Shown piece by piece: positions 9,294 through 46,502 of a stretch of 64,000 bases of DNA. Numbering within the stretch: position 1 is the first letter of the stretch; each line of letters starts with the position of its first letter. The stretch lies in sequence record OM456492.1; one strand, written 5' to 3'. The translations under genes were made by a program, and so were the position numbers. Below the pieces are notes generated by a model. It made no database searches and was not told where the DNA came from. It saw only the letters and a list, made by a program, of their open reading frames with translations.

Positions 9294-9296
9294 TAG

Positions 9297-9323
9297 AATA
9301 CTCCTTTAGATTAATAGTCGATT
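9297..9323 (-). promoter_or_regulatory. Conserved 27-nt 5' leader/RBS element
   Basis: Minus strand AATCGACTATTAATCTAAAGGAGTATT, identical at 37926-37952; 2 mismatches at 45619-45645. Confidence 0.8.
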
Positions 9324-9343
9324 AGAGAGTTTAACGACAACTC

Positions 9344-9369
9344 TCACTAAGGTAATATATATCTGAAAT
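9344..9369 (-). promoter_or_regulatory. Class A early (vRNAP) promoter, TATATTAC core
   Basis: Minus strand ATTTCAGATATATATTACCTTAGTGA; TATATTAC is the phiKZ early promoter consensus; 26-bp copies at 37974 and 46477. Confidence 0.85.
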
Positions 9370-9425
9370 TTAGTGGACTGGAAGCAAAAAGCATAGGACT
9401 GTTCTGATCTGTAAAAAAGACAATA

Positions 9426-9453
9426 CCCTCTTACCCGAAGGTAAGAGGGGTAC
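9426..9453 (-). terminator. Intrinsic terminator, cUUCGg loop; identical 28-bp copy at 36041-36068
   Basis: CCCTCTTACC-CGAA-GGTAAGAGGG on the + strand with an A tract upstream (U tract on minus). Confidence 0.9.
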
Positions 9454-9455
9454 AA

Positions 9456-10079
9456 CTAACCTGCCAGAATACGTTCAACGATACGTGCGGCTTGTAACGC
9501 TATATCGTCGTCAGCCGTAACGCGCATCAGCGGGAACTTATCGCCGCCATCTGTGGTGATGTGGAAAGCAAAACGGTAATGGTCGCGTAAGGCGTCCCAA
9601 TCGGTCTGTGAGCGCAGATACTTCGCTGTCAGTACCTCATCATCCCAGTTCTTGCCCTGGGCTTCTGCGCGCTTCTTAAAGCGTTCTGTGGCGGTTTCGT
9701 AGGATACATCGGTTGCCACGTAAAGTTTCGGTGCGTTAATGTGGTCTAACACCCGCGAACGGAAAACTTCCCCTTTACCATCTACGCCCTGGTAGACAAT
9801 GGTCGATTGACAAAAACGGTCAAAAATAACGACATCGTGCTCTGGTACAACGAAGTCCATCGTGTAATGGAAATCCAGACACATCGCTTTGGCAATACGT
9901 TCATTAGAGGCGTGCTGGATAACCAGAGAGCGTGCACTAATACCGGCTTCAGTGGTATTCGTCGGGTGATTGACGATGATGGCATTAACGCCAGCGGAGC
10001 GCAACATCGCTTGAATCGTTTTAGCGAGTGTTGATTTGCCAGAAAAATCTGGACCATCCAGCGCCACTGAGTTTAACAT
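9456..10079 (-). CDS. tmk: Thymidylate (dTMP) kinase-like P-loop kinase
   Basis: VALDGPDFSGKST P-loop, VVIFDRF (DR motif), HPT after the P-loop; start moved to MLNSVAL. Confidence 0.85.
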   Translation of the reverse strand: MLNSVALDGPDFSGKSTLAKTIQAMLRSAGVNAIIVNHPTNTTEAGISARSLVIQHASNERIAKAMCLDFHYTMDFVVPEHDVVIFDRFCQSTIVYQGVDGKGEVFRSRVLDHINAPKLYVATDVSYETATERFKKRAEAQGKNWDDEVLTAKYLRSQTDWDALRDHYRFAFHITTDGGDKFPLMRVTADDDIALQAARIVERILAG

Positions 10080-10155
10080 TTTATTCTTCCCCAAAAGTTT
10101 AATTAATTGTAGTGGTGTCACAATATAGCGACCAAACGTAAAGAAAAAAATAAAA

Positions 10156-10177
10156 CAGGCACCCCGAAGGATGCCTG
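10156..10177 (-). terminator. Intrinsic terminator
   Basis: CAGGCACC-CGAA-GGATGCCTG hairpin with a long T tract on the minus strand. Confidence 0.8.
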
Positions 10178-10190
10178 ACATTAGATGCTA

Positions 10191-10949
10191 TTACTCGATA
10201 GCCTTGTGGTTCTTCATTTCTGGTGTCCAGGTGTGTTCAATCCATGCTTCGATGACCGGCTTGATGCCCGGACTCTTGAAGAAAGCATTTAATGACGGCC
10301 ATTCCCCTAACGCGTACTTGTTAGTGAAATTGAGCGACATTACACTGAAGCCTTCGCCTTTGTTAAACAACGCAGAAGGGGCCAAGGAATAAGACAACAT
10401 GGCCTGCGGCGTATCCGATTCGGGACGCAGCAGTGTCATGCGGCGGGTAACACGCAGTTCAATATCGTTGAAGTTAGCCCGGAGGTCTTCTTTAAATTTG
10501 ACACTGCGGAAGAAACGATTTCCTGTTTCGGATGCTTTATTTACCAATCGCTCGGTTTGCATCACGTCTTTAAAATACGCATTGATGCATTCTTCAATGA
10601 AGACATAGCGTGGTGCAGCTTCACGCAGTGCTTCTAAGTCGAACTCTTTCCATGCGGGGATGAGTTCAGGCTTACGGGCGATGTGTTTAAAGAACATCCT
10701 GGCTGAGACTTCGCGCAGTGCTTTCAGCAACCCGCGAATAACATCTTCCCGCGTTGCGTTAGTTGCGAAGAACTCAGTCGTGCCATGTACAACGGTACCG
10801 CCTGTTTTAGCGCTGATGAGCTTATGCTCTATCATAATCGGCATCCCGCCCTTACCGATCATCTCTTCGTTATACAAAAATACATAACGATATTCGCCAC
10901 AGGCAGTGGGGACGGACAGGAACTCTTTCTTCGTAGTATTAACAGTCAT
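10191..10949 (-). CDS. Hypothetical protein
   Basis: 252-aa ORF behind a structured leader and class B motif. Confidence 0.85.
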   Translation of the reverse strand: MTVNTTKKEFLSVPTACGEYRYVFLYNEEMIGKGGMPIMIEHKLISAKTGGTVVHGTTEFFATNATREDVIRGLLKALREVSARMFFKHIARKPELIPAWKEFDLEALREAAPRYVFIEECINAYFKDVMQTERLVNKASETGNRFFRSVKFKEDLRANFNDIELRVTRRMTLLRPESDTPQAMLSYSLAPSALFNKGEGFSVMSLNFTNKYALGEWPSLNAFFKSPGIKPVIEAWIEHTWTPEMKNHKAIE

Positions 10950-11043
10950 GGTATTTCTCTCTTAGTTTAAGTTGGTGAGTTTTAACCGACTCACAACGGC
11001 TTCTAGCATATGCTAAGGATGAAACGTAAATTTTGTACGTCTC

Positions 11044-11068
11044 CCTAAAATAATATCTATCCGAAAAA
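11044..11068 (-). promoter_or_regulatory. Class B promoter-like motif
   Basis: Minus strand TTTTTCGGATAGATATTATTTTAGG. Confidence 0.7.
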
Positions 11069-11079
11069 CAATAGAGTCG

Positions 11080-11101
11080 ACCCACTCCCGAAGGAGTGGG
11101 T
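11080..11101 (-). terminator. Intrinsic terminator, cUUCGg loop
   Basis: ACCCACTCC-CGAA-GGAGTGGGT directly after the stop of 11107..11706. Confidence 0.8.
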
Positions 11102-11106
11102 ATAAC

Positions 11107-11706
11107 TCACTGATGATCAACTTTCGGTTCAGACCACTCGGGGACTGGCGGAAGTTTAATATCAGTTGCGTATTCTGAAGGCACTGCGAGTGTGGTAAAG
11201 CCACGACATGCCAAATAGTGCTGCATTCGTGCTGCCTGATTCGGTGTGTCGGTGATCACCAAATGGGTCTTACGCATAAGTGCGAGTACCGCCTGTCCTT
11301 CTTGCGGCGTAGGTGTACGTGGATGCTTACTGATAATGCTCATTAACCAGTCACGCGCAATACCACCTATATTACAACTGGCCTCGCGCAAATCAACCAC
11401 ACCTTCACCTTCACCCACCACCTGTTTGGTAGAGTTAGGATAAAAGCGATACGGTGCACGACGACGCTTACGACGTACTTCTGAAATAGCACGTCCAAGT
11501 ATCATCTGTGCGTGTTTAACACTACAGCCGTCCACCGGTCTACGCATGTTCGTTACTAAACAGGCAATTTCTAACACCTTGCCGATTTGATAGCGACGCT
11601 TAAAGCCATGACGACTTATGTCTACGTATTCTGGAAGATTGCCGTTTTTATTGATGTTTGCAACCGTAATCAAAAACAGCGAATCGAGAATCATCTCAGA
11701 CATCAC
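11107..11706 (-). CDS. Hypothetical protein (Arg-rich patch)
   Basis: 199-aa ORF, SD GGGG. Confidence 0.8.
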   Translation of the reverse strand: MMSEMILDSLFLITVANINKNGNLPEYVDISRHGFKRRYQIGKVLEIACLVTNMRRPVDGCSVKHAQMILGRAISEVRRKRRRAPYRFYPNSTKQVVGEGEGVVDLREASCNIGGIARDWLMSIISKHPRTPTPQEGQAVLALMRKTHLVITDTPNQAARMQHYLACRGFTTLAVPSEYATDIKLPPVPEWSEPKVDHQ

Positions 11707-11715
11707 AGTTTCCCC

Positions 11716-12087
11716 TTAAAACCCCGCAACGACTGCAGACATAAAGTCATGAACGACTTTACGTTGTTCTGCAAGCGGGTAGCCAAATTTAGTAATGTCG
11801 TGCATCCACCGTATTTGGTGGGTCCGACCATCGTGACGGAATGTGGAGCGCAGTACCAGGAAATAATCCGCACTGACTCGGAAATGTAACGAGCAGCTGC
11901 CATGTTTGGCTCGCACGGTCAACTGAATACGCTTTACGCCGTCGCCTAGATACTTAGCGTCGATGTCGACCTGGTCAACCTCTGGTACGGTCCGTAAGGC
12001 TTGCGCGACGTCTTCCAGGTCCCCGTTCTTGCTCACATTAGCGCCATGGAGCGCTGCGGTACAGAGTTGAAGCTCTCGATAGAACAT
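11716..12087 (-). CDS. Hypothetical protein
   Basis: 123-aa ORF, SD GGAG. Confidence 0.8.
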   Translation of the reverse strand: MFYRELQLCTAALHGANVSKNGDLEDVAQALRTVPEVDQVDIDAKYLGDGVKRIQLTVRAKHGSCSLHFRVSADYFLVLRSTFRHDGRTHQIRWMHDITKFGYPLAEQRKVVHDFMSAVVAGF

Positions 12088-12641
12088 CCTTCTAGTCTCC
12101 TGTCCCTCCCATAGTTCAAGGGATTTTTATAATACCAATCTTCATGCACAGGAGTCACGCGGATATACCGGCTGTAAAACAACAAGTATTTGTAGAAGGT
12201 ATCAATACTGACGTCTTTGTCCACTGATAAAAAATAGTTTAAAGACGGGTCGTCTGGGAACGACACAAAGATACCGGTGAAGTGCGTATCGGCATAGGGG
12301 CCATTAAACGGCGTCACTTCACACTTCAGGCAAGGTAAACCAACCTGAAACGCGTTCTGTCCTGTCCAGTAGATTCCGCGAGTTGTTGCGTCGCGTGTTT
12401 TCCCATCGGGACGACAAACAATCCCTGCCATAAAACTGGACCGTTGACTTGAGTCGGCGGCATTTAAGAACCGGATTATTCTGTCTACTGAAAAATATTT
12501 TAACGTGCCGGGTGGTATTTGCCAGAACTGTCCCATCGCACGTACCACCTTCCAACCAGGGCGATTTCTTGCCCCAAAACGCTTTACACAAAAAGTATAT
12601 CGCGAGCCAGTCTGATGCGGCACGCTGCGGACAGCTACCAT
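12033..12641 (-). CDS. Hypothetical protein
   Basis: 202-aa ORF, SD AAGGAG; 55-nt overlap with the downstream gene. Confidence 0.7.
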   Translation of the reverse strand: MVAVRSVPHQTGSRYTFCVKRFGARNRPGWKVVRAMGQFWQIPPGTLKYFSVDRIIRFLNAADSSQRSSFMAGIVCRPDGKTRDATTRGIYWTGQNAFQVGLPCLKCEVTPFNGPYADTHFTGIFVSFPDDPSLNYFLSVDKDVSIDTFYKYLLFYSRYIRVTPVHEDWYYKNPLNYGRDRRLEGCSIESFNSVPQRSMALM

Positions 12642-12642
12642 G

Positions 12643-13110
12643 TTAAAGCTCCTTTACCATATCCTGGTATTCAGTTCGGAATCCGAAACGTTCATAAAAC
12701 GCAATAGCACGGTCGTTATTACCGAGCACGTTAAGCTGCATCCATGCACAGCCTTTTGATTTGCCGTAATTTTCTACGGCTTCAATTAACTCATGCCCGA
12801 CGCCTTGAGAGCGAACCGATTCGTCTACAAAGAAGTTATATACCCAGAGGAAACGTTGTCCCTTTTTGGTGTAGCCAAAGGTGATGAAGCCCACAGCCAC
12901 ACCACGGTCATCAACGGCGCAAGCGCACAGCGTACCTTCACCCCAAACCTCCTCCAGTTTTGAGATTTGATTAAACCCTTCACGACCGTTTAAGTCGGCA
13001 AGTTTTATTTTCTGATCGTCGTATAACTTGTTGTGTAGTCCTAACAAGTCCGCGTAGTATTTCTTTCCATACGGAGAGTTGGGCTTGGTGACAAAAACAA
13101 TTTTCATCAT
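12643..13110 (-). CDS. GNAT acetyltransferase
   Basis: VYNFFVDESVRSQGVGHELI (motif A) and LNVLGNNDRAIAFYERFGF (motif B). Confidence 0.92.
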   Translation of the reverse strand: MMKIVFVTKPNSPYGKKYYADLLGLHNKLYDDQKIKLADLNGREGFNQISKLEEVWGEGTLCACAVDDRGVAVGFITFGYTKKGQRFLWVYNFFVDESVRSQGVGHELIEAVENYGKSKGCAWMQLNVLGNNDRAIAFYERFGFRTEYQDMVKEL

Positions 13111-14240
13111 TTCACCTCAGCCAACGACTGTTTTGTCCACTCCATTAGACCCTCCGCCACACGTACCAATGCTGTGGTAAATGCATCTTCCATCGCCATT
13201 GCATTGCGGTACCGCAGAGTAGCTTCTTTCAGCTCAGCCCCTTCTAGGTTCTTAAGCTCGGACTTCATCGCTTCCACTTCTTCGTAGATACCAGTGTAGC
13301 CCACAACACGGTTCTTTGTTCCGCGTGCTGCAATAGATTTGATAAGTGCTTCCACAGCCTCTATTGCTTTCCCACACTGATGCATATCCAGCGATTTAAT
13401 GGTTTCACCATACTCGCCGTCACGCGCAATTGCCCAACTGACCTTACCACTATGGTGCTCAACCACAACGATATTTCCAGGGACAGGAAAAGCTTCCACC
13501 TTTTTAAAGGGATCGATGATGCCAAGCAACCCAGCAGCGCGCTTAACTGCCCAGTTCGTGGACTTGCTGATTTGTTTTAAGCCTGGCCCTTCGAATGCTT
13601 TGCTTTTCTTCAGGGCGGTGCGTGTGTAAACCGTGTACTTTTGCACGACGCCTTCGTACGCATTTGTTTGTTTAGAAAACTTAACACACGCTTCAAAATC
13701 GGGGCGATCTTCAAAGCAAATTTTAGACGTCCAGCTGCTCGTGTGAACGTCAACTGGAGCGAGTGTTTTGTGGTCATCTAACAACGACATTCGCGTTTTA
13801 AGCTTATTGAGCTTACGTTCCATGAAAGCAGCTTTCGAGGTTATTTCTTTCAAACGGTCGGCTTGCTCTTTCGCCAACGCCTCCGCAAAATCGTAGAAAC
13901 GTAACGCGAGCTTTTTAGAGAGTTTACCTGCGCCCTTTGCGGTTGCACCTAGTCCTGCGCCCACTAACTTTCCAGTACCTTTAACAGCTTTCGCAGTAAT
14001 GCGCCCTGCTACACGATGAACGCCAGCCAGCGGGTCAGTATCAGTCATAAACTGAGCACGCTCCATCGCTTCACGCGATTCACGAGCAACCAACATATCT
14101 TCACCGTCATCGGTTAAGCACCAACGCTGACGAATCGCACAAACCGCAGGGAAGTCGGGCTTAACTCCCAGACCTTCGAGTGCGACCAGGCGATCGTAGT
14201 CGTCAGTCAGGACTTCTAAATCTAAATCGAGCGTCGACAT
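13107..14240 (-). CDS. Probable inner-head (virion) protein with propeptide
   Basis: Acidic N-terminus with VALE and VARES protease-type sites, then an amphipathic/basic body like the 46571-49185 paralogs. Confidence 0.65.
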   Translation of the reverse strand: MSTLDLDLEVLTDDYDRLVALEGLGVKPDFPAVCAIRQRWCLTDDGEDMLVARESREAMERAQFMTDTDPLAGVHRVAGRITAKAVKGTGKLVGAGLGATAKGAGKLSKKLALRFYDFAEALAKEQADRLKEITSKAAFMERKLNKLKTRMSLLDDHKTLAPVDVHTSSWTSKICFEDRPDFEACVKFSKQTNAYEGVVQKYTVYTRTALKKSKAFEGPGLKQISKSTNWAVKRAAGLLGIIDPFKKVEAFPVPGNIVVVEHHSGKVSWAIARDGEYGETIKSLDMHQCGKAIEAVEALIKSIAARGTKNRVVGYTGIYEEVEAMKSELKNLEGAELKEATLRYRNAMAMEDAFTTALVRVAEGLMEWTKQSLAEVK

Positions 14241-14250
14241 CCCCTGCTCC

Positions 14251-14523
14251 TTATATCTGCGTCAAAGTATAGTAATAGTTGCGATGTGGCCAGCGGACGC
14301 ACAAGGCAAATATCTCTCCCGTATCCGGTGTGGTGTAGACCGTCTGAATTGGGTCATTTTCTTGTGGCGCGACTTTCGAATCAAAACCGTGACGTTCCAG
14401 GTAATCGAAAAACTCATCTTCGGTGCCTGGGAACAGACGAAGGCTGGTCACCTTCTTAATGGGTTTTGACGGCGTAGGGAAGAACGCTTCCCACAAACGA
14501 CGAGCTAAACTGGTAGTTTGCAT
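14251..14523 (-). CDS. Hypothetical protein
   Basis: 90-aa ORF, SD GAGG. Confidence 0.75.
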   Translation of the reverse strand: MQTTSLARRLWEAFFPTPSKPIKKVTSLRLFPGTEDEFFDYLERHGFDSKVAPQENDPIQTVYTTPDTGEIFALCVRWPHRNYYYTLTQI

Positions 14524-14553
14524 AATAGCGACCTCTGATTAAAGGCAACGTGG

Positions 14554-15153
14554 TCATAATAAGCACAAGCTCTCAAGCCACAGATGTCCTTCAAGCGCAT
14601 GGTGGTAACAAGGAATACCACACTGCTTAGCGTATTTCACGCCCATGGCAGTACCGCCGGTCGGATTACCTTGCTTATCTAAAGGCGCAGAGTAATAAAC
14701 TGCGTCTACAGGCGTTGCTAAATCATCGCCCATAATTATATTCAAATTACGCCCGTGAAGCGCCCAGGCGAACTCCTGGAGCTTTTCTGGCGCGGGATGA
14801 AGCTTACCTACTATCTCACGATAGCGGTCATCCTGAGGGATTACACGGAACTCTACGTTGGGATTCTGTTTCTTGAGCCAGAGCTTTTTCTCATCGGGTA
14901 GGTAACAAATGAACTCATCGTCCCACGCCACTTTCTTGCCAGTATCTCGGTCGATTGTATTCGCCCACTGTCGGGCAAACCGGAATTGCAATTGGTCAGG
15001 GCCAGACCAACAGCCGCCGGAAGAAAATTGAATCGTGTAACCTTTGGCGTGCAACGCATTAAACCCGCGTAACAACCGCATGTACATTTCAGACATGGTA
15101 TCTTCATCAGTCTTCCGAGAACCGATTACCGCAATTTTATAAATCTTTTTCAT
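14554..15153 (-). CDS. SLOG-superfamily (DprA/YspA-like) protein
   Basis: KIAVIGSRKT, SSGGCWSGPD, LHGRN, TGGTAMGVKYAKQCGIP motifs. Confidence 0.8.
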   Translation of the reverse strand: MKKIYKIAVIGSRKTDEDTMSEMYMRLLRGFNALHAKGYTIQFSSGGCWSGPDQLQFRFARQWANTIDRDTGKKVAWDDEFICYLPDEKKLWLKKQNPNVEFRVIPQDDRYREIVGKLHPAPEKLQEFAWALHGRNLNIIMGDDLATPVDAVYYSAPLDKQGNPTGGTAMGVKYAKQCGIPCYHHALEGHLWLESLCLL

Positions 15154-15207
15154 GGACTTACCTCCTATACGGAGTGGACGATTCGTAAGAAAAAAAAAAA
15201 TAAATAC

Positions 15208-15232
15208 CTACCCTCGCCTTTAGCGAGGGTAG
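15208..15232 (-). terminator. Intrinsic terminator
   Basis: CTACCCTCGC-CTTTA-GCGAGGGTAG plus a long T tract on the minus strand. Confidence 0.85.
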
Positions 15233-15236
15233 TGTC

Positions 15237-15854: not shown

Positions 15855-15914
15855 GCCTCGCTCCTGGTATTTGATTAAGGGGGGTCATAATACTTCACAG
15901 GAAAATAATAAACA

Positions 15915-15938
15915 GTATAGGGGCCGAAGCCCCTATAC
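15915..15938 (-). terminator. Intrinsic terminator, cUUCGg loop
   Basis: GTATAGGGGC-CGAA-GCCCCTATAC. Confidence 0.85.
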
Positions 15939-15945
15939 GCTGTGT

Positions 15946-16335: not shown

Positions 16336-16337
16336 AT

Positions 16338-30894: not shown

Positions 30895-30918
30895 CGTAGA
30901 TAATATCTATCTCAGATT
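30895..30918 (-). promoter_or_regulatory. Class B promoter-like motif
   Basis: Minus strand AATCTGAGATAGATATTATCTACG; contains the palindrome AGATAATATCT (30898-30908). Confidence 0.7.
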
Positions 30919-31151: not shown

Positions 31152-31175
31152 CTAAGATAATATCTATCTATAATT
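31152..31175 (-). promoter_or_regulatory. Class B promoter-like motif
   Basis: Minus strand AATTATAGATAGATATTATCTTAG; palindrome AGATAATATCT at 31155-31165. Confidence 0.7.
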
Positions 31176-37597: not shown

Positions 37598-37779
37598 TAG
37601 TAAATCTCCTGCTGCATTGGAAACACATTACCTGTCGGTGAGACAAGTAAAACTTGCGCGGTAACGTGAACGATTTCTTCTTCGTCCTGACGACGAACAC
37701 CGTTAGTGAGATTATCCCACTCACGTTTAAAACGCGGGTGAGATAAGAACTCGGCAAACTCCGTATCAGAAAAGTCCAT
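37597..37779 (-). CDS. Small acidic hypothetical protein
   Basis: Start moved to MDFSDTEF, TAATG-coupled to the upstream peptide gene. Confidence 0.75.
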   Translation of the reverse strand: MDFSDTEFAEFLSHPRFKREWDNLTNGVRRQDEEEIVHVTAQVLLVSPTGNVFPMQQEIY

Positions 37780-37922
37780 TAGCCGCGACCTGTACACATG
37801 GCAACAGAGTTACCGTTATCGATGCACTTGTTGTAATCTTGAGTTACAGTGATGGACAGTACCGCGAAAGCAACAACTGCAACGATGGCAAAGATGGCAC
37901 GTTTATGGTTACGAGTTAACAT
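37779..37922 (-). CDS. Small membrane peptide with Cys pair (47 aa, MLTRNHKRAIFAIVAVVAFAVLSITVTQDYNKCIDNGNSVAMCTGRG)
   Basis: Manually translated; directly behind the conserved leader (SD AAGGAG) and early promoter. Confidence 0.8.
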   Translation of the reverse strand: MLTRNHKRAIFAIVAVVAFAVLSITVTQDYNKCIDNGNSVAMCTGRG

Positions 37923-37925
37923 GGC

Positions 37926-37952
37926 AATACTCCTTTAGATTAATAGTCGATT
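37926..37952 (-). promoter_or_regulatory. Conserved 27-nt 5' leader/RBS element
   Basis: Identical to 9297-9323. Confidence 0.8.
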
Positions 37953-37973
37953 GAGTTGATAGATTGTCTTCTA

Positions 37974-37999
37974 TCACCTAGGTAATATATATCTGAAAT
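37974..37999 (-). promoter_or_regulatory. Class A early promoter
   Basis: Minus strand ATTTCAGATATATATTACCTAGGTGA, identical to 46477-46502. Confidence 0.85.
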
Positions 38000-38018: not shown

Positions 38019-38120
38019 CCCTCTATAACGCTCTCAAACGCGTTTTGAGAGCTTTTATCGTTTTAGAGGGTCGTTCTACCGTTAGACTAGCTTTAGAAGG
38101 ATGTGAGTGCGTTTAGAGGG
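38019..38120. repeat. Cluster of direct and inverted CGTTT(T)AGAGGG-like repeats
   Basis: Direct copies at 38041-38051, 38059-38070, 38092-38100 and 38110-38120; inverted copies at 38019-38030 and 38031-38040. Confidence 0.65.
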
Positions 38121-38962: not shown

Positions 38963-39005
38963 TGCAATATTTTCCTTAAGGTTACTTACGGGTCATACTA
39001 GATGA

Positions 39006-40319: not shown

Positions 40320-40858
40320 TAGCGACCTCCTCGGGCTCTATAAGCGTACTCAATACGTTTCATAATCGTATCATTAAAACGGTGGAGTTTAGACTCCAGG
40401 CGGACCTGCCCAAATAACGACTGAACACAGTCCGCCATCGTTGCCGTGGGTTTCTTGAAATACCCGTAGCGGTTAGCCACAGGAAACAGTTTCGAAGCCA
40501 GCACATTGAACTGACGCAACCCTTCGATAGGGACTTCCCGGTAAATCAGCGTCGGGTTCTCCAGATAGTTCAGCCAGTCCGCAAGGTGTTCCATAATCCA
40601 CCCGTACACTTTAATCCCGTCATGCGGGTCGTGTACATCTAACGCACCACCGGTCGCTAAATACTCAGCGGCTTCCGAGGGATGCAGATAGATAGGCTTC
40701 ATGTTCAGTAACAACGCTTGTCGTTTCTTCGGGTCTTCTGGCAAGAACAATCCGTGTTCCTGACTGGCGTAGGTTGTGATGGTTGCATATTCCGGTACCC
40801 GGAAGAACACCCACGCTTTAAACAGCATAAATGCTGCACTGCGCTTCTTCTCCGACAT
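40319..40858 (-). CDS. Conserved hypothetical protein
   Basis: 179 aa, coupled in the structural operon. Confidence 0.8.
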   Translation of the reverse strand: MSEKKRSAAFMLFKAWVFFRVPEYATITTYASQEHGLFLPEDPKKRQALLLNMKPIYLHPSEAAEYLATGGALDVHDPHDGIKVYGWIMEHLADWLNYLENPTLIYREVPIEGLRQFNVLASKLFPVANRYGYFKKPTATMADCVQSLFGQVRLESKLHRFNDTIMKRIEYAYRARGGR

Positions 40859-40860
40859 TA

Positions 40861-42216
40861 CTACCTCGCGTATTTCAAAATCACGTAGACCATCGGGACG
40901 TAATAGAACTGACTGTCCTTCGGTAAAGCCAGCACCAATTCTGCTAGACGTGCGGCCACTTCACTAGGTACTGGTTGTTTGTTCAGATACAAGTACAAAC
41001 AATGCTCCAGAACCGAGCTGTACGAGCCGCTATAGAACGTTTCGCTTAACAGGTAGGGTTTATACGTCAACGGCAGAAAAGCCACCATATCCTCGCCTGC
41101 GTTGCCCTGATACTCAGGGAACATAACCGGTTCAAATGCTTCGAACTCTGGCCATTCCCCATCGTACGTTGCCAACTGACGAATCTGTGATGTAAAGAAG
41201 CGCGTTGAACTGAACTGTGACCATGCGATGGTGTTGCGGGTCTGCATCGTTCTGAAAGTGCGCGGGTTAACTGCGCTGCATTCTTTCTCAACGTACGGTA
41301 GTAGTCCTGGCTGTTGATTTAACAACACCGTGAACAGCGTTTCGATATCTTGCACAGGTTTCGGCGGGTGTGGGTAAATACGGATATCTTTACCAACGGT
41401 TCGAAGACCGATAGCCTTCACAAACATCGCCAAGAAGACGTCGTAGTAGCCGCCTGCCTTTAACCCGTCGAGTTTCCAGTCGCGTGGATAAGCAAGAGTT
41501 TCTAAACTGGTATCGTAGAAACGGCGAACAAACGTCGTCTCAATGTCCTTAATGCGGTCTCCCAGCTCCAGGAACGTACGATACTCGTTGGGGGTCAGTA
41601 AGGTATCACCACCGGTCCACGCACGCTCACGGACGTAATGGAGCGTTCTGACGGTACACAGACGAATCGTCTCTGCAATCTGCGGAGTAATCTCGTACAA
41701 CATCGTGTAACGTATCTGATACGTTGCAATTTTGTTGTTCGACATTCGGGTAACGGCAGTGATGTTAAACAGACCGTGTCGATGATCACCTATTGGGGCA
41801 ACGAAAAAGTCGCCTTCATTCGGTGTAATCGACGCGACCAGTGTCGACGTCCCGGTCAGCTCGAAAGTCTTACGTTGTTCGTCCTGCGTACGGTCAAGCG
41901 GCGCGTTAACACGCAACGACAAATTAACAATCTTAAGCAGCTGTTGCGTAGGGCTGTCGTTCTGGGTATCGAACATCGTCTTCGGATCGTTGCGACCCGA
42001 CAGCGCGTGATAAAAATCAACCGGCCATTCAGAACCTTCGTTGTATTGCAGGAGATACTGTTTCGGAATCCTGTCGAAGTCCGTTACCGTGGTGCGGGTT
42101 GGAATCGTTACCAAGTTACTGGCTTCTTTCACCCCGTCCTGCGGTTTATTGATAATCGGAATCTCAGGTTCAACAGGAACGAATTTGGTATCACCCCTCT
42201 TGTTCGCCTTGAGCAT
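40861..42216 (-). CDS. Virion neck/head-closure protein (T4 gp14-like)
   Basis: PNEGDFFVAPIGDHRHGLFNITAV resembles gp14 PxEGDLIYxP...LFEI. Confidence 0.6.
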   Translation of the reverse strand: MLKANKRGDTKFVPVEPEIPIINKPQDGVKEASNLVTIPTRTTVTDFDRIPKQYLLQYNEGSEWPVDFYHALSGRNDPKTMFDTQNDSPTQQLLKIVNLSLRVNAPLDRTQDEQRKTFELTGTSTLVASITPNEGDFFVAPIGDHRHGLFNITAVTRMSNNKIATYQIRYTMLYEITPQIAETIRLCTVRTLHYVRERAWTGGDTLLTPNEYRTFLELGDRIKDIETTFVRRFYDTSLETLAYPRDWKLDGLKAGGYYDVFLAMFVKAIGLRTVGKDIRIYPHPPKPVQDIETLFTVLLNQQPGLLPYVEKECSAVNPRTFRTMQTRNTIAWSQFSSTRFFTSQIRQLATYDGEWPEFEAFEPVMFPEYQGNAGEDMVAFLPLTYKPYLLSETFYSGSYSSVLEHCLYLYLNKQPVPSEVAARLAELVLALPKDSQFYYVPMVYVILKYAR

Positions 42217-43693
42217 TATCGGCTCCTCTGATGGCTATAATCGTGGTATTAAATTGCGTCAACAGGACACGGCGATAGAACTTCGTGATTTCGTCAATCA
42301 CACTTGGTGGTAACACAGGTTTATCCCACCACCAATCCGGGCAATCCCAATCTGGGAATAACCACTCAATAAGCACTTTTGCCGCTTTTGGATAAAGATG
42401 CAGTGGCCATAAGTCCAGATTACGCCAGTCGTGTATTGCCGACTCTGTTAAGTAGTACGCTTTCTCGACATGAACTTCACGGTTACGTAGCGAGAAGACG
42501 CCGTTCTCCCAATGATAGAAACGCGGTTCAATAATTTGACCGTTCTCGAACAATTCCATACGGATAATGCCCGTCTGACCTGTCGGGTCTATCGTGCGAC
42601 AGTGCTCGATATAAGGAACCACGTCGGCATTCCAGACATACGGTAAATCATCGATGCTACAAACCTCAGGGTCGATCATGTTTTCTTCACCGAAGGCTAC
42701 ATCGGTGCCGAACACATGCAGAAGTTTTGCTTTTAGCGGCGAGTGTGTGCGTTCGAACTGTTCTGTCGGTGACAGCAGATACGGCAGGCGTAAGAACTGA
42801 CGGGATTCATTAATCCACCACGTCCCGTCGAGATTCTTCTGCTGTTGGTGACGTTGCACACCTTCTTCATTACTCACAAACGGCGGGTCTATCTCAGGCC
42901 ACCATTCATCAGGCAACGGTGTTTGGTTGATGATGTACGGATAAGTAACCACCACCTCTTCAGGGCGTTGATACGAGAAACGTATAACGAAACTGGTTTC
43001 GTAATGGTTCTCATCGTTATCCCAGGTAGGAGAGATAACATCGTAAACCGTCTCGATACGGGTTGGTGCGTAGCGTACCGCTAAGACATTCTGGCCACCG
43101 GCGACATTGCCTGTGGTGAAAACGTCGGGTGTGAAATGTGCCTTTAGATAGGCTTTAAAGTCGTCGTACTTCGGTACGCGGGTCCCTGCGGCGATATAGC
43201 ATTCGTTCAATAGCTTAAGCGCAGGCTTTGGAATCAGGTAGTACGCTTCGGATTCCGTCATGGTCGAATAGCGACCCATGTCGATAAGTGAATCCAAGCG
43301 GTTTGCCCAACGTAACAATTCGTCACGCGATGGGCCGACACGCCGTAGCGTGATAGTCACGTTATACATTACGCGGACAGGAGCAGCGCGTACTTGGTCT
43401 TCGGGGTTATGGAAGAATGGAATCTCTGCCGCTAACCCAACTTGACGGTTAATGCGTGCACGTTCATCGCGTTCTTCTTCCACTTCGACGTAGACACGGT
43501 TCGGTGCTGAATAGTCCACCGGTGTCTCATCGCCGAGCGTAGAGCCTGGCTGATGGGCGGTGTTGAAGCTATCCGTGAAAACAACACTGGCACGTTCAAT
43601 ACCAGATTCGTTTAGCACACGTTCTACGACGCCGTCGACCACAGCTTTGCGCATGGTCTTGTCCAACGATGGAATTTCAAAATACTGTTGCAT
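42191..43693 (-). CDS. Virion neck/tail-completion protein (gp15-like)
   Basis: 500 aa; adjacent to the gp14-like gene; TATGAC motif upstream. Confidence 0.55.
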   Translation of the reverse strand: MQQYFEIPSLDKTMRKAVVDGVVERVLNESGIERASVVFTDSFNTAHQPGSTLGDETPVDYSAPNRVYVEVEEERDERARINRQVGLAAEIPFFHNPEDQVRAAPVRVMYNVTITLRRVGPSRDELLRWANRLDSLIDMGRYSTMTESEAYYLIPKPALKLLNECYIAAGTRVPKYDDFKAYLKAHFTPDVFTTGNVAGGQNVLAVRYAPTRIETVYDVISPTWDNDENHYETSFVIRFSYQRPEEVVVTYPYIINQTPLPDEWWPEIDPPFVSNEEGVQRHQQQKNLDGTWWINESRQFLRLPYLLSPTEQFERTHSPLKAKLLHVFGTDVAFGEENMIDPEVCSIDDLPYVWNADVVPYIEHCRTIDPTGQTGIIRMELFENGQIIEPRFYHWENGVFSLRNREVHVEKAYYLTESAIHDWRNLDLWPLHLYPKAAKVLIEWLFPDWDCPDWWWDKPVLPPSVIDEITKFYRRVLLTQFNTTIIAIRGADNAQGEQEG

Positions 43694-43744
43694 TAGCTGT
43701 CCCTCGTTGTAGTCATATCACTGGCCTAAAACGCAAAAAAAAGA

Positions 43745-43764
43745 AAGGGAGCCGAAACTCCCTT
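43745..43764 (-). terminator. Intrinsic terminator
   Basis: AAGGGAG-CCGAAA-CTCCCTT plus T tract on the minus strand. Confidence 0.75.
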
Positions 43765-43770
43765 CGTGTT

Positions 43771-44100
43771 TTAGTGGGCCAGCCAAGCTAGCTGCCACTT
43801 CTTACATTTTATTCCGCTGTGTCCAACTGGATTGCGGATAATGTCCATCGTTTGCCCGACAACGAATTCAATCATCTTGTCCGATAACCTTTTACCCATC
43901 GCGATAGAGAGGGCTGTAACTTGATCAGGGCCATCGATGTATGCATAAACCGGCTCGTTGCTGCCGAAAATGAGATAGAAGGAACCCTCGCACACCACAA
44001 TTGACGTCAGTGGTAGAATACAATCGGTATACTCTTTCGCCAGTTCAGCCGCTTTTGGGGTTACTTCCATCACGTAACCTTTAACAGTTTTCTTTTCCAC
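43771..44100 (-). CDS. Hypothetical protein
   Basis: 109 aa, GTG start, SD GGAG. Confidence 0.75.
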   Translation of the reverse strand: MEKKTVKGYVMEVTPKAAELAKEYTDCILPLTSIVVCEGSFYLIFGSNEPVYAYIDGPDQVTALSIAMGKRLSDKMIEFVVGQTMDIIRNPVGHSGIKCKKWQLAWLAH

Positions 44101-44101
44101 T

Positions 44102-44653
44102 TTAAACTCCAGCGATACGATTTAAAATTTGATACGTCCAACGGTGCGTGTGTTTCTGACCGTCGGGTAAATGGGTCATGGTGTAGTCGACTTGAAAAAC
44201 ATCTCTGTCGATTTCTGGGAAGAAAGCATCGGCACCTTCAACAGCGATGTCGATACGCGACAGATAGATACGATCCGCGCGAGCGAGGGTTTGTTGATAA
44301 ATTGATGCGCCGCCGATAATCATCACCTCTTGCTCTTTCCCGGTATCTTTCTCAATACGCTCCAGAGCTTTGATAGCTAAATCAATACTCGTGTGATACG
44401 TCACCAAACGCATGTCGGTGTGTTCTTCCCGGCCACTAATATAAGCTTCTGGGTTACGAGTAACGATTAAGTTACCGCGGTTAGGCAAAGGACGACAACC
44501 TAACGATTCCCAGGTCTTGCTGCCCATGATAACGTTCTTCCCTGTGGTGATTGCCTTAAAGTTAGCCAGGTCGGCAGGCAGACGCCATGGCAGTTCGTTG
44601 TTTTTACCGATGGCGTTGTTGCGGTCCATCGCGACGATAATAGAGAGTTTCAC
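44102..44653 (-). CDS. folA: Dihydrofolate reductase
   Basis: IIVAMDRNNAIGKNNELPWRLPADLANFK, VIMGSKTWESL, LPNRGNLIVT, MIIGGASIY, GADAFFP. Confidence 0.97.
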   Translation of the reverse strand: MKLSIIVAMDRNNAIGKNNELPWRLPADLANFKAITTGKNVIMGSKTWESLGCRPLPNRGNLIVTRNPEAYISGREEHTDMRLVTYHTSIDLAIKALERIEKDTGKEQEVMIIGGASIYQQTLARADRIYLSRIDIAVEGADAFFPEIDRDVFQVDYTMTHLPDGQKHTHRWTYQILNRIAGV

Positions 44654-45024
44654 GGTTTGCTCCTACGGGCTTTAGATAATTCTTTCATTGCGTGGCGTAA
44701 ATAGCGACTAAATTCAAGACGGCTGTACGTGAATGTCACCGGATAGTCCAGAATCACCGACAGTGATACCGTTCTGGCATCCACCTCGACCAACAGACTG
44801 TTCGTACAGCAACCTGCAAACATCCCACGGCCAACCAACGGCCGCTTCAGTCTGATGGTTAGCGTACCCAACCATTCTCTGTTGCCAAGCAGTAACAAGG
44901 CTTCTGCCAGGTCTTCCTCGACTATCGCTAGACAGTGTTCATCGTCTCGTACACGGAGGCGAATCTGCGGTTCTACGTTTATAGTTTCTGTTGTCATCTC
45001 AAATTTAAATTTATCACCCATCAC
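44650..45024 (-). CDS. Hypothetical protein
   Basis: 124 aa, overlaps the folA start by 4 nt. Confidence 0.75.
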   Translation of the reverse strand: MMGDKFKFEMTTETINVEPQIRLRVRDDEHCLAIVEEDLAEALLLLGNREWLGTLTIRLKRPLVGRGMFAGCCTNSLLVEVDARTVSLSVILDYPVTFTYSRLEFSRYLRHAMKELSKARRSKP

Positions 45025-45040
45025 ACAACCCCAAAAAAGA

Positions 45041-45061
45041 AGGTGGCTTGTTAGGCCACCT
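45041..45061 (-). terminator. Intrinsic terminator
   Basis: AGGTGGC-TTGTTAG-GCCACCT plus T tract on the minus strand. Confidence 0.7.
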
Positions 45062-45068
45062 TATTAAA

Positions 45069-45614
45069 TCATTGAACCATACGCTGCGCGTCGTAAGACG
45101 GTGCGAGGTTCACAACACGACCATGTAGAGTTTGCTCTGCTTCGTCTAACAGGTCATCACGTACGAGCGTCTGGCGAATATAGAGTGTTGCACGCACCCC
45201 TTCTGCATTATAAGGAGCGGTGACCATTTTGGTCTGGTAACCATCAATCGTCACCGGAACTCGCTCGCCGCTACGACGAACAAAATGCTCCAACTTACCG
45301 TAATCGTGACTGCAGACTTTAGACATGTCAGACAATCCCGCATCGATTAAGTATTTCCAAAGACCGATGATGGCTTCTGAGCAATGTTTGTTAAGTTCGC
45401 CTTCGACGACAAACTCGTACCCACCGTACGTTAGAATGTGCGTGCCTGCTGAACGACGGTCACATTCTAAAATGAACACGCCCAGACCAATCATAACTGG
45501 ACGTGGGATTGTCATGACACCGGTACTAAATTGCAGCGTAGTAACCTCATCCCAAAGGGGTGATGATTTATCGTTACTTACGCTGATAATATCTTTAAGA
45601 TTGACACGTTTCAT
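45069..45614 (-). CDS. Hypothetical protein
   Basis: 181 aa behind a conserved-leader variant. Confidence 0.85.
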   Translation of the reverse strand: MKRVNLKDIISVSNDKSSPLWDEVTTLQFSTGVMTIPRPVMIGLGVFILECDRRSAGTHILTYGGYEFVVEGELNKHCSEAIIGLWKYLIDAGLSDMSKVCSHDYGKLEHFVRRSGERVPVTIDGYQTKMVTAPYNAEGVRATLYIRQTLVRDDLLDEAEQTLHGRVVNLAPSYDAQRMVQ

Positions 45615-45618
45615 TATA

Positions 45619-45645
45619 AATACTCCTTAAGATTAATGGTCGATT
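45619..45645 (-). promoter_or_regulatory. Conserved 27-nt leader variant
   Basis: Minus strand AATCGACCATTAATCTTAAGGAGTATT (2 mismatches to the 9297/37926 copies), immediately preceded by TATGT. Confidence 0.7.
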
Positions 45646-45672
45646 ACATACGGTTTCAGGCTAACGTAATAT

Positions 45673-46434
45673 TTACGCTGCTGGTTCTTCAGCGGTTTTC
45701 ACTTCAACTGGTTTCATCATAGAGTTCGCACAGTCGAAGATAGCATCCAGGAAACCACGGAACGGCTTCATGGCCTCACGCTGGGCGTTCTGACGTTCTT
45801 CTTCAGCTGCGACTTCTTGCGCCTGAATTTCTTCAGCGGTCAGCTCCGGGTGTTCCGTCATACTTTCTGCCAGCGACATCACTTTCGGCTGCGCATTCCG
45901 AATCGGAATACGGCGGATGACCTTGGTGATGTTCCCGAGCTTCATCCCACCCAGCGCGGTTTCGAACAGTGTACCAAAATCCTGCAGTGGGTCTTCGCTG
46001 ACTTCCAGTACCGCCGGAGTCGCAACCAGACCAAAGGCAATGACCAGTTCAACAGCAGTGTCGGTGACGTGCACAGCGAACGGGGTTTCTTCCATCTGCA
46101 GGTAAGTGTTACCATTATAGGTCACCGGAATGAATTTGATTTCTTCCCCTTTCTTCAGTCGCAGTGTATCGACTGCGGCTTTGTACTGAACTTCGTACAG
46201 TTCCGGTTTAACACCGTCAACGTTATCCAGTGTAAAGAGCAGGTCGCCAACCGCCATACGACGCGGAAGTTTGCGTTTGTTGATTTCGCGCAGCCAGACT
46301 TGTAAGCCTGTGAATTGAATTGGGGACAGTATGATTTTAAAGCCGTTGGTTGCTTGCAGGGTAGCACCGTCGTCTTCGTTACGTTCGATAGAGCCATTAG
46401 CCAGAGTGAGCAGATTGATAGTTTTCATTTTCAT
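45673..46434 (-). CDS. Hypothetical early protein, high-expression codon usage
   Basis: 253 aa directly downstream of a class A promoter. Confidence 0.88.
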   Translation of the reverse strand: MKMKTINLLTLANGSIERNEDDGATLQATNGFKIILSPIQFTGLQVWLREINKRKLPRRMAVGDLLFTLDNVDGVKPELYEVQYKAAVDTLRLKKGEEIKFIPVTYNGNTYLQMEETPFAVHVTDTAVELVIAFGLVATPAVLEVSEDPLQDFGTLFETALGGMKLGNITKVIRRIPIRNAQPKVMSLAESMTEHPELTAEEIQAQEVAAEEERQNAQREAMKPFRGFLDAIFDCANSMMKPVEVKTAEEPAA

Positions 46435-46476
46435 ATTCCTTAAGTGATAGTCGGTTAAAAGATTACCAATGCAATC

Positions 46477-46502
46477 TCACCTAGGTAATATATATCTGAA
46501 AT
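46477..46502 (-). promoter_or_regulatory. Class A early promoter
   Basis: Identical 26 bp to 37974-37999. Confidence 0.85.

Follow-up and report, generated by a model that had tools for sequence, protein, structure and literature searches.

The three composite intergenic blocks described here are, on balance, best read as copies of a repeated early-expression cassette of SPN3US-type jumbo phages, in which a stabilising hairpin is combined with an extended translation-initiation leader and the repeats would also act as recombination joints. They lie in a window of 64,000 nucleotides, the whole stretch of DNA that was analysed, which corresponds to positions 62001-126000 of the record of Salmonella phage SaP7 (OM456492.1; Seoulvirus, SPN3US-like jumbo phage). 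In its usual order from 5' to 3' the cassette would consist of a terminator insulating it against transcription from upstream, a phiKZ/AR9-type promoter (TTTCAGATATATATTAC-N6-G) read by the RNA polymerase packaged in the virion, a stem-loop of 6-9 bp that opens with the predicted +1 G, and a leader of about 28 nt, single-stranded by prediction, made up of the box AATCGACYATTA, a spacer of 3-7 nt, a strong SD (AAGGAG) and TATT. The leader would end 3-4 nt 5' of the ATG. Every promoter, hairpin and leader element listed in the initial annotation of the window was recovered at its position on the minus strand (Table 1), and the observation as such is real.

Table 1. Cassette features in the window, in order of transcription within each cassette
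Feature	Position	Strand	Remarks
Terminator-like hairpin with T-run, intrinsic type	9426..9449	-	10 pairs, 6 GC, T-rich tail
Class A early promoter 1 (ATTTCAGATATATATTACCTTAGTGA)	9344..9369	-	predicted TSS G 9345, 6 nt past TTAC
5'-terminal hairpin 1	9325..9345	-	GAGAGTT / 7-nt loop / AACTCTC, from predicted +1; 7 bp
Leader copy 1 (AATCGACTATTAATCTAAAGGAGTATT, SD included)	9297..9323	-	predicted unpaired
First gene of cassette 1, 121-aa HTH (Cro/C1-type) DNA-binding protein	8928..9293	-	phrog_7126 5.8e-50; HTH_3
Palindromic stem upstream of cassette 2	38030..38052	.	terminator-like by scan on + strand only
Class A early promoter 2	37974..37999	-	predicted TSS G 37975
5'-terminal hairpin 2	37958..37975	-	GATAGA / 6-nt loop / TCTATC; 6 bp
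Leader copy 2	37926..37952	-	identical to leader copy 1
First gene of cassette 2, 47-aa protein, phrog_8574	37779..37922	-	without Pfam match
Intrinsic-terminator-like hairpin with T-run, upstream of cassette 3	46535..46560	-	11 pairs, 6 GC
Class A early promoter 3	46477..46502	-	predicted TSS G 46478
5'-terminal hairpin 3	46459..46478	-	GAGATTGC / ATTG / GTAATCTT; 8 bp, two G:U pairs
Diverged leader (AACCGACTATCA + SD; AACCGACTATCACTTAAGGAAT...)	46429..46456	-	akin to a variant of one Erwinia-phage clade
First gene of cassette 3, 251 aa, phrog_18643	45673..46428	-	
Leader-only copy between two cistrons	45619..45645	-	2 mismatches; without promoter or hairpin
Gene after leader-only copy, 181 aa, phrog_12369	45069..45614	-	

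The terminator-like hairpin directly 5' of the first cassette closes the upstream thymidylate-kinase unit, and its stem is conserved in Erwinia phage Asesino. A weak ATATTAC relic is seen near the leader-only copy, at about 45666-45674.

SaP7 encodes split beta/beta' RNA polymerase subunits, as in the phiKZ/AR9 group. The 26-nt promoter pattern has three matches in the window versus 0.00 expected in shuffles, the SaP7 genome contains seven class A promoters, all on the minus strand, and no sigma-70 promoter match was found within the three window cassettes. The class A core, ATATATTAC-N6-G, is the early promoter pattern of the phiKZ/AR9-type virion RNA polymerase, and this core with its N6-G spacing places the promoters in the virion-polymerase early type. 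For AR9 the published consensus is AAATATATATTAT-N6-G+1, and according to the same paper transcription in phiKZ and phiR1-37 begins 6 nt past the consensus; in the first 50 kb of phiKZ, TATATTAC is followed by N6-G at all seven such sites. Predicted promoters published for N1M2, OBP and 201phi2-1 run on to ..GTG. Like those of SaP7, the phiKZ/AR9 early promoters have the core ATATATTAC/T and the N6-G spacing and stand at the heads of co-oriented early operons; the SaP7 promoters differ in their longer consensus (TTTCAGATATATATTACCTAGGTGA) and in their small number of only about seven copies. By homology with the mapped starts of AR9, phiKZ and phiR1-37, transcription would begin at the G that forms the first base of each hairpin, rather than downstream of the hairpins; for promoter 1 both the consensus and the spacing of the predicted start were taken from these phages and from the phiKZ sequence.

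A hairpin is present at 7/7 class A promoters of SaP7. The stems of such hairpins are short and AU-rich (-4 to -9 kcal/mol). Hairpins 1 and 2 of the window fold with -7.6 kcal/mol (z -3.99) and -4.2 kcal/mol (z -3.47), and hairpin 3 with -6.6 kcal/mol (z -5.0) in the sense direction. These folds confirm the hairpins initially described as 7-8 bp long, but stem 2 has 6 bp in the predicted transcript and reaches 7 bp only when position -1 is counted. Hairpin 3 had been said to pair on the transcribed strand only, via G:U; the remark holds because the antisense fold is limited to -1.5 kcal/mol, although the opposite strand retains a 5-bp core of Watson-Crick pairs.

In SPN3US and Asesino the stem of hairpin 1 is kept and the loop is different, while the SPAsTU orthologue of promoter 2 has a wholly different stem (GAGAGTTGA/CAACTCTC). 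The comparison was extended to 65 unique promoter copies, taken from some 20 related jumbo phages and contigs (Salmonella, Erwinia and Cronobacter). Of these copies, 60% have a perfectly paired stem of 6 bp or more with its anchor between +1 and +3, as against 8% of dinucleotide shuffles, and the mean minimum free energy is -5.9 kcal/mol, as against -2.5 kcal/mol. About 85% of the anchored stems of this length start exactly at +1 (own count from the promoter list); about a quarter of the 65 copies are without a clean anchored stem. In a covariance-model alignment of 92 hits, which was fitted to the structure and contains sequences related to one another, 93.3% of the stem cells are paired versus 74.3% in shuffles (a level reached by 0/500), double-sided stem changes number 100 versus 30, and covariation amounts to 0.264 versus 0.090, falling to 0.044 or less once the pairing partners are slid out of register. 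This strong stem covariation among the promoters of relatives upholds the claim of a conserved structure with changed sequence. Over the 65 promoters the sense fold is the stabler one (-6.9 versus -5.6 kcal/mol; sense better in 44, antisense in 21), and G:U pairs are more frequent than A:C (38 versus 20), a modest asymmetry which is in part due to pairing of G+1 with the T-rich 3' flank.

The hairpin most likely works in RNA. According to the literature, RppH and RNase E require a 5' end that is single-stranded, and structure at the 5' end is stabilising for this reason. When the 5' triphosphate end is base-paired, neither RppH nor 5'-end-dependent RNase E can act on it well, and the first-wave mRNAs would therefore be longer-lived, as in ompA and T7 gene 10. 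The role of a 5' stabiliser, as initially proposed, fits a stem that begins at the transcription start predicted by homology. Stabilisers of the ompA/papA type likewise have a stem placed at the 5' end or no more than a couple of nucleotides away (predicted in SaP7) and protect against the same two activities; they belong to single host genes with measured half-lives, whereas the role in SaP7 is deduced from position and covariation only. In T7 gene 10 the stem starts at +1. Its phi10/gene 10 leader also resembles the cassette in combining a phage-polymerase promoter, a stem-loop and a short leader that is unstructured and has a strong SD of the AAGGAG type, but the T7 polymerase is single-subunit and that of SaP7 multisubunit, the sequences are unrelated, and the SaP7 element, unlike T7 gene 10, recurs throughout the genome with a stem that varies. 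The T7g10 stem-loop has been reported to stabilise the mRNA, and the 27-nt T7g10 upstream sequence to form a strong RBS.

An action of the hairpin on transcription instead of mRNA decay appears unlikely. The inverted repeat from +1 to +20 might help promoter clearance or strip the nascent RNA off the template, the hairpin might be a promoter-proximal pause or attenuator, or the promoter might include a DNA hairpin, as it does in phage N4. The register of the stem relative to the promoter is indeed fixed across all clades, but N4-type hairpins lie upstream of the start, while here the predicted start is the first stem base, and phiKZ promoters of the same class are generally without a hairpin at the start (no stem-loop at 6/7 promoters examined). 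Since these phiKZ promoters work without such hairpins, the hairpin is inessential to this polymerase family. TTTT follows many hairpins of the Erwinia clade, a strong terminator stands between promoter plus hairpin and leader at record 688, and 201phi2-1 is published to make short 5'UTR-derived RNAs through premature termination; the hairpins nevertheless fail terminator criteria, having too few GC pairs and an inadequate T-run, and the TT 3' of the stem is largely explained by pairing with G+1 and A+2. The G:U pairs and the greater stability of the sense fold also point to RNA made from the transcribed strand.

The 27-nt leader occurs in the window as two exact copies and a third with 2 mismatches, versus 0.00 expected; the identical pair, the near-identical copy and the diverged copy of the initial annotation are all confirmed, the last being similar to a variant common in one Erwinia-phage clade (GACTATCAAGGA). 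With at most one mismatch, the 12-mer box of the leader has ten matches in 240 kb versus about one expected (own calculation, uniform composition), all on the minus strand just 5' of an SD and ATG and mostly 16-19 nt before the ATG. The box precedes the first gene after each of the seven class A promoters. Most of the remaining genes in these early operons lack it, and it is also found without a promoter on internal cistrons and after terminators. No hairpin was seen by eye before the leader-only copies, apart from the terminators that precede two of them. The proteins encoded 3' of the leader copies are mutually unrelated. Together with the preceding T, leader copy 1 is identical to its Asesino orthologue at 28/28 positions against a regional identity of about 66%; the probability of such a match by chance is about 9e-6 (own calculation). 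On account of this cross-genus identity the leader is considered to be under purifying selection: it is conserved well beyond the SD, as first noted, and its copies are not merely recent neutral duplications. The leader is most likely an extended translation-initiation region that would enhance translation, its upstream box being probably read by a specific putative partner. Complementarity of the box to 16S rRNA is no better than chance, in contrast to the T7 enhancer, for which pairing with 16S rRNA has been proposed.

Such a partner could also be a regulator. That the box is an operator through which a trans-acting factor shuts off or times the earliest genes is a rather doubtful reading, either as a translational repressor site on the RNA beside the SD, like that of T4 RegA, or as a DNA-binding roadblock just downstream of each early promoter. 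Identity at 28/28 positions between genera is more than ribosome binding alone should need, the box has a specific CGAC core and not a generic A/U richness, it occurs at the first gene of every class A promoter, and clade-specific leader variants are compatible with co-evolution of a factor. The candidate regulator would be the HTH protein of cassette 1, a Cro/C1-type gene driven by one of the cassettes in an arrangement conserved in Asesino; direct inspection of the box, however, reveals no dyad symmetry of the kind usual for Cro/C1-type dimer sites. The promoterless copies keep a fixed distance to the ATG and not to the start site, which argues against a DNA roadblock. T4 RegA operators are a conserved sequence beside the SD or AUG that is common to a set of early mRNAs. 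The RegA operator lies over the AUG and the SaP7 box upstream of the SD, and the likeness is a lead only.

Hairpin and leader had further been proposed to act as a zip-code, by which a phage or host factor moves the earliest transcripts from the vesicle or nucleus or hands them to ribosomes. Although the elements are confined to virion-polymerase early promoters of the nucleus-forming phage group and the leader is conserved position by position, this is very improbable: hairpin sequence and loop are free to vary, the leader is lineage-specific, with other leaders in other clades and none in phiKZ early UTRs, and its presence on internal cistrons and after terminators means that no separate export step is needed at those sites. 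We know of no export factor or protein that binds either motif. The initial interpretation is thus supported in part, namely for the promoter type, the conserved hairpin structure and selection on the leader, while sequence-specific recognition of the hairpin is unlikely because its loops and stems vary freely.

Leader copies also lie where gene indels between relatives begin or end, in the manner of T4 PeSLs, a point missed in the initial annotation. In SPAsTU a 144-aa gene lies between two leader copies, in place of which SaP7 has a single fused copy (leader copy 2), and a 135-aa gene lies directly upstream of the promoter orthologous to promoter 2; neither gene has a tblastn match in SaP7. 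Nucleotide homology between SaP7 and STsAS stops 16 nt past the ATG that follows the leader-only copy, and homology to JN03 and pEa_SNUABM_29 stops at the same SaP7 position. The close likeness of the leader copies is partly due to this location, and recombination among them could account for their high identity within the genome to a greater extent than function does.

It is conceivable, if somewhat unlikely, that promoter and leader identity is chiefly a by-product of duplication and recombination, the blocks being PeSL-like mobile cassettes in which the leader, the SD excepted, would have no function of its own in the RNA. Unrelated genes preceded by identical blocks of 26-27 nt, one indel with a leader copy on either side and another abutting a promoter, the loss of homology to three relatives right after the leader-only copy, a 'house' leader proper to each clade, and the recurrence of 12 nt of the leader (GACTATTAATCT) as loop and 3' arm of a hairpin in Erwinia-phage-like contigs would all agree with this, as does the published behaviour of T4 PeSLs. 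Yet the syntenic Asesino leader, unchanged between diverged flanks and next to an altered hairpin loop, indicates purifying selection and not recency; gene conversion would have homogenised the hairpins between the identical blocks too, and these differ. Function and recombination are, moreover, compatible with each other.

Preference is given to the functional cassette with recombining repeats. Like the SaP7 cassettes, T4 PeSLs are composite intergenic repeats of about 100 bp in which terminator, early promoter, stem-loop and SD are brought together; both adjoin small genes of unknown function and bound gene indels between relatives. The PeSLs differ in having a sigma-70-like promoter and a GC-rich stem-loop that is itself the terminator, whereas the SaP7 cassette has a promoter for the phage's own RNA polymerase, a separate upstream terminator and a variable AU-rich stem at +1. 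Promoter and leader form near-identical direct repeats and for this reason probably serve as homologous-recombination joints through which early genes would be inserted and deleted, as by the PeSLs of T4.

Salmonella phage SaP7 (OM456492.1; Seoulvirus SPN3US) is a jumbo phage of 240.6 kb, and the window is 100% identical to part of its record, window positions being record positions minus 62000. The record's annotation lists several split RNAP beta/beta' subunit genes, as expected for a phage with a virion RNA polymerase (vRNAP). The 26-nt pattern of the class A early promoter occurs three times in the window, where shuffled sequences give an expectation of none. The whole genome holds six exact copies and one close variant (GATAGATATTAC), all seven on the minus strand. 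An AT-rich consensus of the phiKZ/AR9 type, ...ATATATTA(C/T), is common to many SaP7 intergenic sites. A scan found no sigma-70-type promoter in the three window cassettes (promoter, hairpin and leader), and same-strand terminator-like hairpins lie upstream of two of the three.

According to the AR9 paper, the AR9 early promoter is AAATATATATTAT-(6N)-G+1, and transcription in phiKZ and phiR1-37 likewise starts 6 nt past their own consensus. In the first 50 kb of phiKZ, TATATTAC-N6-G is present at seven sites. The published predicted promoters of N1M2, OBP and 201phi2-1 have ...ATATTA(C/T)...GTG in common, and reviews, which attribute the AT-rich block to the virion RNAP, put it at about -10. 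In sequence, the SaP7 class A core matches these early promoters of phiKZ-related phages. All seven SaP7 copies have, as a feature of the sequence, a G at position 7 after TTAC, and from the alignment with phiKZ-related promoters we infer that +1 is the G of ..GGT-G-A... No transcriptome, transcription map or 5'-end data for the SPN3US group were found in the literature searched.

The G placed as +1 by homology is the exact first base of a hairpin 5' arm (9345, 37975 and 46478). Each window promoter is directly followed by an inverted repeat; hairpins 1, 2 and 3 fold at -7.6, -4.2 and -6.6 kcal/mol (z-scores -4.0, -3.5 and -5.0). Hairpin 3 depends on two G:U pairs and reaches only -1.5 kcal/mol on the opposite strand. 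The initial annotation had noticed these promoters with their adjoining hairpins and the G:U pairing of the third on the transcribed strand; both observations are confirmed, and the pattern reaches far beyond the window, to seven promoters and ten matches of the leader box in the SaP7 genome. A stem of 6-9 bp stands in the same register after 7/7 class A promoters, with at least five different stem sequences. Ahead of leader-only copies, which have neither promoter nor +1 hairpin, no hairpin was seen in SaP7 apart from terminators before two of them. Since the hairpins track promoters and not leader-only copies, promoter and hairpin are separable from leader and Shine-Dalgarno sequence (SD). 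As intrinsic terminators or attenuators the +1 hairpins were rejected, with 0/3 in the window passing the scan and energies of -4 to -8 kcal/mol. No Rfam family matched at gathering score within the 64-kb window.

Coordinates of promoters, promoter-like sites, leader copies and small SPAsTU genes
Feature	Sequence	Coordinates	Strand	Basis
Class A promoter 1	window	9344-9369	-	26-nt pattern match
Class A promoter 2	window	37974-37999	-	26-nt pattern match
Class A promoter 3	window	46477-46502	-	26-nt pattern match
Leader, 27 nt, exact	window	9297-9323	-	sequence match
Leader, 27 nt, exact	window	37926-37952	-	sequence match
Leader-only copy, 2 mismatches	window	45619-45645	-	sequence match
Diverged leader copy	window	46429-46456	-	sequence comparison
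Class B promoter-like, GATAGATATTAT-N6-G	window	11050-11061, 30900-30911, 31157-31168	-	
Class B promoter-like, outside window	record	135821, 139564, 140980, 223453		
Small gene at/near cassette, 135 aa	SPAsTU (L181)	3584-3988		
Small gene at/near cassette, 144 aa	SPAsTU (L181)	4085-4519		
Small gene at/near cassette, 94 aa	SPAsTU (L181)	5075-5359		

By BLAST the element is present in 71 phage records (Salmonella 33, Erwinia 31, plus Cronobacter, Escherichia, Proteus and Vibrio). Pattern scans of IMG/VR delivered 65 unique promoter instances, which come from some 20 genomes or contigs of jumbo phages; the scans were rerun with a stricter pattern after marine-phage coding sequence with the same 21-mer had flooded the first scan. 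This 21-mer, AGATATATATTACNNNNGTGA, occurs in more than 80 small marine viral contigs of IMG/VR (L006-L125) within a conserved coding sequence, a coincidental match unrelated to the promoter. Anchored at +1 to +3, perfect stems of 6 bp or more occur in 60% of the 65 instances and in 8% of dinucleotide shuffles, and the mean minimum free energy is -5.9 vs -2.5 kcal/mol. About 85% of the stems of this length start exactly at +1, a position itself set by homology.

A covariance model built from eleven copies with an 8-bp stem and a 4-nt loop recovered 92 sites. In the resulting alignment, which is fitted to the structure and consists of related sequences, 93.3% of cells are paired (74.3% in shuffles), 100 cells are changed on both sides (30 in shuffles), and the covariation score is 0.264 (0.090 in shuffles, of which 0/500 come up to the observed score; 0.044 or below when the partners are slid). 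Covariation across relatives had been proposed initially as a check, and it bore the structure out. Three to five Watson-Crick pair types are represented at each of positions +3 to +8. The stem is swapped outright at one orthologous promoter, from GATAGA/TCTATC in SaP7 to GAGAGTTGA/CAACTCTC in the Seoulvirus SPAsTU. In the +1 hairpin, structure is conserved rather than sequence.

Folding is better in the sense strand than in the antisense strand (-6.9 vs -5.6 kcal/mol; sense better in 44 cases, antisense in 21), and 38 G:U pairs stand against 20 A:C pairs, their antisense equivalent. This strand asymmetry modestly favours RNA on the transcribed strand. N4-type promoters have a DNA hairpin upstream of the start; as the homology-inferred SaP7 start is the first stem base, the SaP7 hairpin would lie downstream of it. 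We regard action of the hairpin at the transcription level as unlikely.

The +1 hairpin is not general to all phiKZ-like phages: it was not seen at six of the seven phiKZ promoters in the first 50 kb, and the seven together average -2.7 vs -2.35 kcal/mol in shuffles. At PHIKZ054 of phiKZ, the nuclear shell protein gene (L180 45568-45610), a hairpin of 10-11 bp is predicted at +1 (-8.8 vs -4.1 kcal/mol in shuffles).

A second group of promoter-like sites, class B, is similar to the predicted N1M2/OBP-type promoter. A +1 hairpin, GAGACGTA..TACGTTTC, comes after the site at window 11061, most other class B sites have none, and at record 140980 a leader box follows directly. At record 612-693 (L001; the same in SPN3US, L147:8428-8502) a strong GC-rich terminator separates class A promoter and hairpin from leader and ATG; this placement predicts either an attenuator or a small early RNA, about 50 nt long, that contains two hairpins. 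At record ~150500-150586 (L004:3500-3586) two degenerate promoter-like sites in tandem, CAGATTGATATTATCTATGTGA and GGCAGATATTATCTCTGCGA, precede a gene that has a leader-like ACTATTAAGGAATATT in its ribosome-binding site (RBS) region. Just upstream of the leader-only copy, AAATATTAC at window 45666-45674 overlaps a stop codon; this may be what is left of a class A promoter, though the likeness is weak.

The leader includes the box AATCGACYATTA and a spacer. All four leaders of the initial annotation were recovered: the exact copies at 9297 and 37926, the one at 45619 with two mismatches, and the diverged one. The box, AATCGACTATTA, has ten matches with at most one mismatch in SaP7, whereas by our calculation 2 x 240.6 kb should contain about 1. 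The ten all lie on the minus strand directly upstream of SD and ATG, in most cases at a distance of 16-19 nt from the ATG. It is present at the first gene after 7/7 class A promoters and, without a promoter, at a few internal or terminator-preceded genes, and it is absent from most other genes of the same operons. The leader is predicted to be unpaired in all seven class A 5' UTRs, six of which are 50-55 nt long; among 58 instances with an assignable start codon the UTR measures mostly 44-64 nt.

The downstream genes are unrelated. One encodes an HTH protein and the other three encode proteins whose function is not known; the four belong to different PHROGs and have no Pfam domain in common, and likeness of the leaders through paralogous genes was rejected. 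The box might serve as operator for a regulator of translation or transcription, possibly for the HTH protein encoded in a cassette; we consider this doubtful. As a 16S-complementary (epsilon-type) enhancer the box was rejected: its best Watson-Crick run of 6 nt is equalled by 90% of shuffles, and the box:16S duplex shows no excess (-9.7 vs -10.4 ± 1.7 kcal/mol in shuffles, with E. coli rrsH as proxy). An antisense partner for the leader inside the phage was also rejected, since plus-strand matches with two mismatches occur in about the chance number.

Erwinia phage Asesino (Erskinevirus) retains the order thymidylate kinase, terminator, promoter, hairpin, leader and HTH gene. The hairpin loop differs from that of SaP7, a 40-nt indel lies upstream, and 28 consecutive leader positions are identical. 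Alignable DNA of the region is about 66% identical, and by our calculation the chance of 28/28 is about 9e-6. This identity against the regional background refutes the possibility, raised at the outset, that the leader copies are recent neutral duplicates. One Erwinia-phage clade has a shorter relative of the leader, TTGACTATCAAGGAAT; the CR5-like clade has ACTATCGTGGAG, and other clades have unrelated recurrent leaders. As leaders vary by clade, the exact leader is a clade-level "house style", whereas promoter and stem are general. Judged from these alignments, the leader is under selection, yet lineage-specific. Twelve nucleotides of the SaP7 leader, GACTATTAATCT (window 37930-37941 and 9301-9312), equal the loop and 3' arm of +1 hairpins in two Erwinia-phage-like contigs (L058, L133), which hints that leader and hairpin halves may share ancestry.

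SPAsTU is about 75-77% identical to SaP7 around cassette 2. Its orthologue of that promoter drives a 144-aa gene, followed by a promoter-less leader copy and a 47-aa gene, and a 135-aa gene adjoins the promoter on the upstream side. In SaP7 a single cassette is joined directly to the 47-aa gene, and 37914-37965 aligns with both SPAsTU leader copies, a double alignment that carries the signature of direct-repeat recombination. Up to GGAGTATT the SaP7 leader is like the first of the two SPAsTU copies, which places the joint near the ATG. The 135-, 144- and 94-aa SPAsTU genes have no tblastn match anywhere in SaP7. One of the three is annotated as 'putative DNA ligase', which is doubtful for a 135-aa protein. 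SaP7 nucleotide homology with STsAS, JN03 and pEa_SNUABM_29 stops 16 nt past the ATG behind the leader-only copy; as a second indel boundary this is only suggestive, since the following gene may just have diverged strongly. Repeat-bounded indels thus number one clear case (SaP7 vs SPAsTU) and one suggestive case. Cassette recombination as the main source of copy identity is possible but less likely than not, and is compatible with the other readings; to the double alignment in SPAsTU stands opposed the leader identity in Asesino.

Two further candidates were discarded. An apparent 1.3-kb insertion of SPN3US against SaP7 is none, since the two agree in gene order; BLAST probably joined a piece of a similar neighbouring gene. 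The "split" cassette of SPFM10 (L179, record 177358-178279) consists of cassette and flank pieces in shuffled order in a record that looks scrambled. The shuffling resembles an assembly problem rather than biology, and several SPFM records give 29-30 BLAST pieces.

Among known systems, the T4 promoter-early stem-loop cassette (PeSL) is similar in that the SaP7 cassette is a composite repeated intergenic unit of promoter, stem-loop and SD, and in that gene indels between SaP7 and a relative are bounded by cassette repeats. The PeSL promoter is sigma-70-like, whereas that of SaP7 is of the vRNAP type; the PeSL stem-loop is a GC-rich terminator/attenuator, whereas SaP7 terminators are separate and upstream and the variable stem is not a terminator. 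In lambda nut (boxA + boxB) a conserved loop is read by a protein, whereas loops of the SaP7 type vary in sequence and in length (3-12 nt). Hairpin and leader box may jointly form a recognition code for a dedicated phage factor, but we hold this to be quite improbable. The factor would be virion-delivered or made first and would mark first-wave transcripts of the virion polymerase, so that these might be loaded onto ribosomes selectively, escape an RNA purge induced by phage or host, leave the early infection compartment, or be shut off at a set time; drift of its specificity between clades would explain the "house" leaders.

With +1 placed by homology, SaP7 stems would begin at the 5' end, like those of ompA and T7 gene 10, and as in T7 gene 10 the cassette combines a phage-polymerase promoter, a stem at the predicted +1, an unstructured leader and a strong SD. 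The 5' stem-loop of T7 gene 10 stabilises the mRNA, and a 27-nt sequence upstream is a strong RBS. Both RppH and RNase E acting by its 5'-end-dependent pathway require single-stranded 5' ends, which explains the stabilisation of ompA and papA by 5' structure. Given this layout and precedent, the most likely reading, which we favour somewhat, is that of a 5'-stabiliser hairpin with an extended translation-initiation leader; the start site, the effects on decay and translation and the nature of a box reader are its deduced parts. The stabiliser of the initial annotation thus fits the +1 stem, but the annotation missed the recombination suggested by the leader-bounded indels, and the export zip-code that it proposed is very improbable. 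The jumbo-phage transcription literature searched contained no mention of the +1 hairpin or of the conserved leader.

Nucleus-forming jumbo phages have a genetic model in SPN3US. For phages of the SPN3US type the cassette predicts exact early start sites, first-wave mRNAs with a base-paired 5' end in these enterobacterial phages and not in phiKZ, and a conserved 28-nt leader with a putative reader. A stabiliser role, if true, would show how a phage shields its earliest messages at a time when its own proteins are presumably limited to virion-delivered ones, and would provide compact portable promoter, stabiliser and RBS parts for engineering such phages. The leader-bounded indels carry the T4 idea of a "mobile regulatory cassette" to an unrelated phage family with its own polymerase and bear on the exchange of accessory early genes by jumbo phages.
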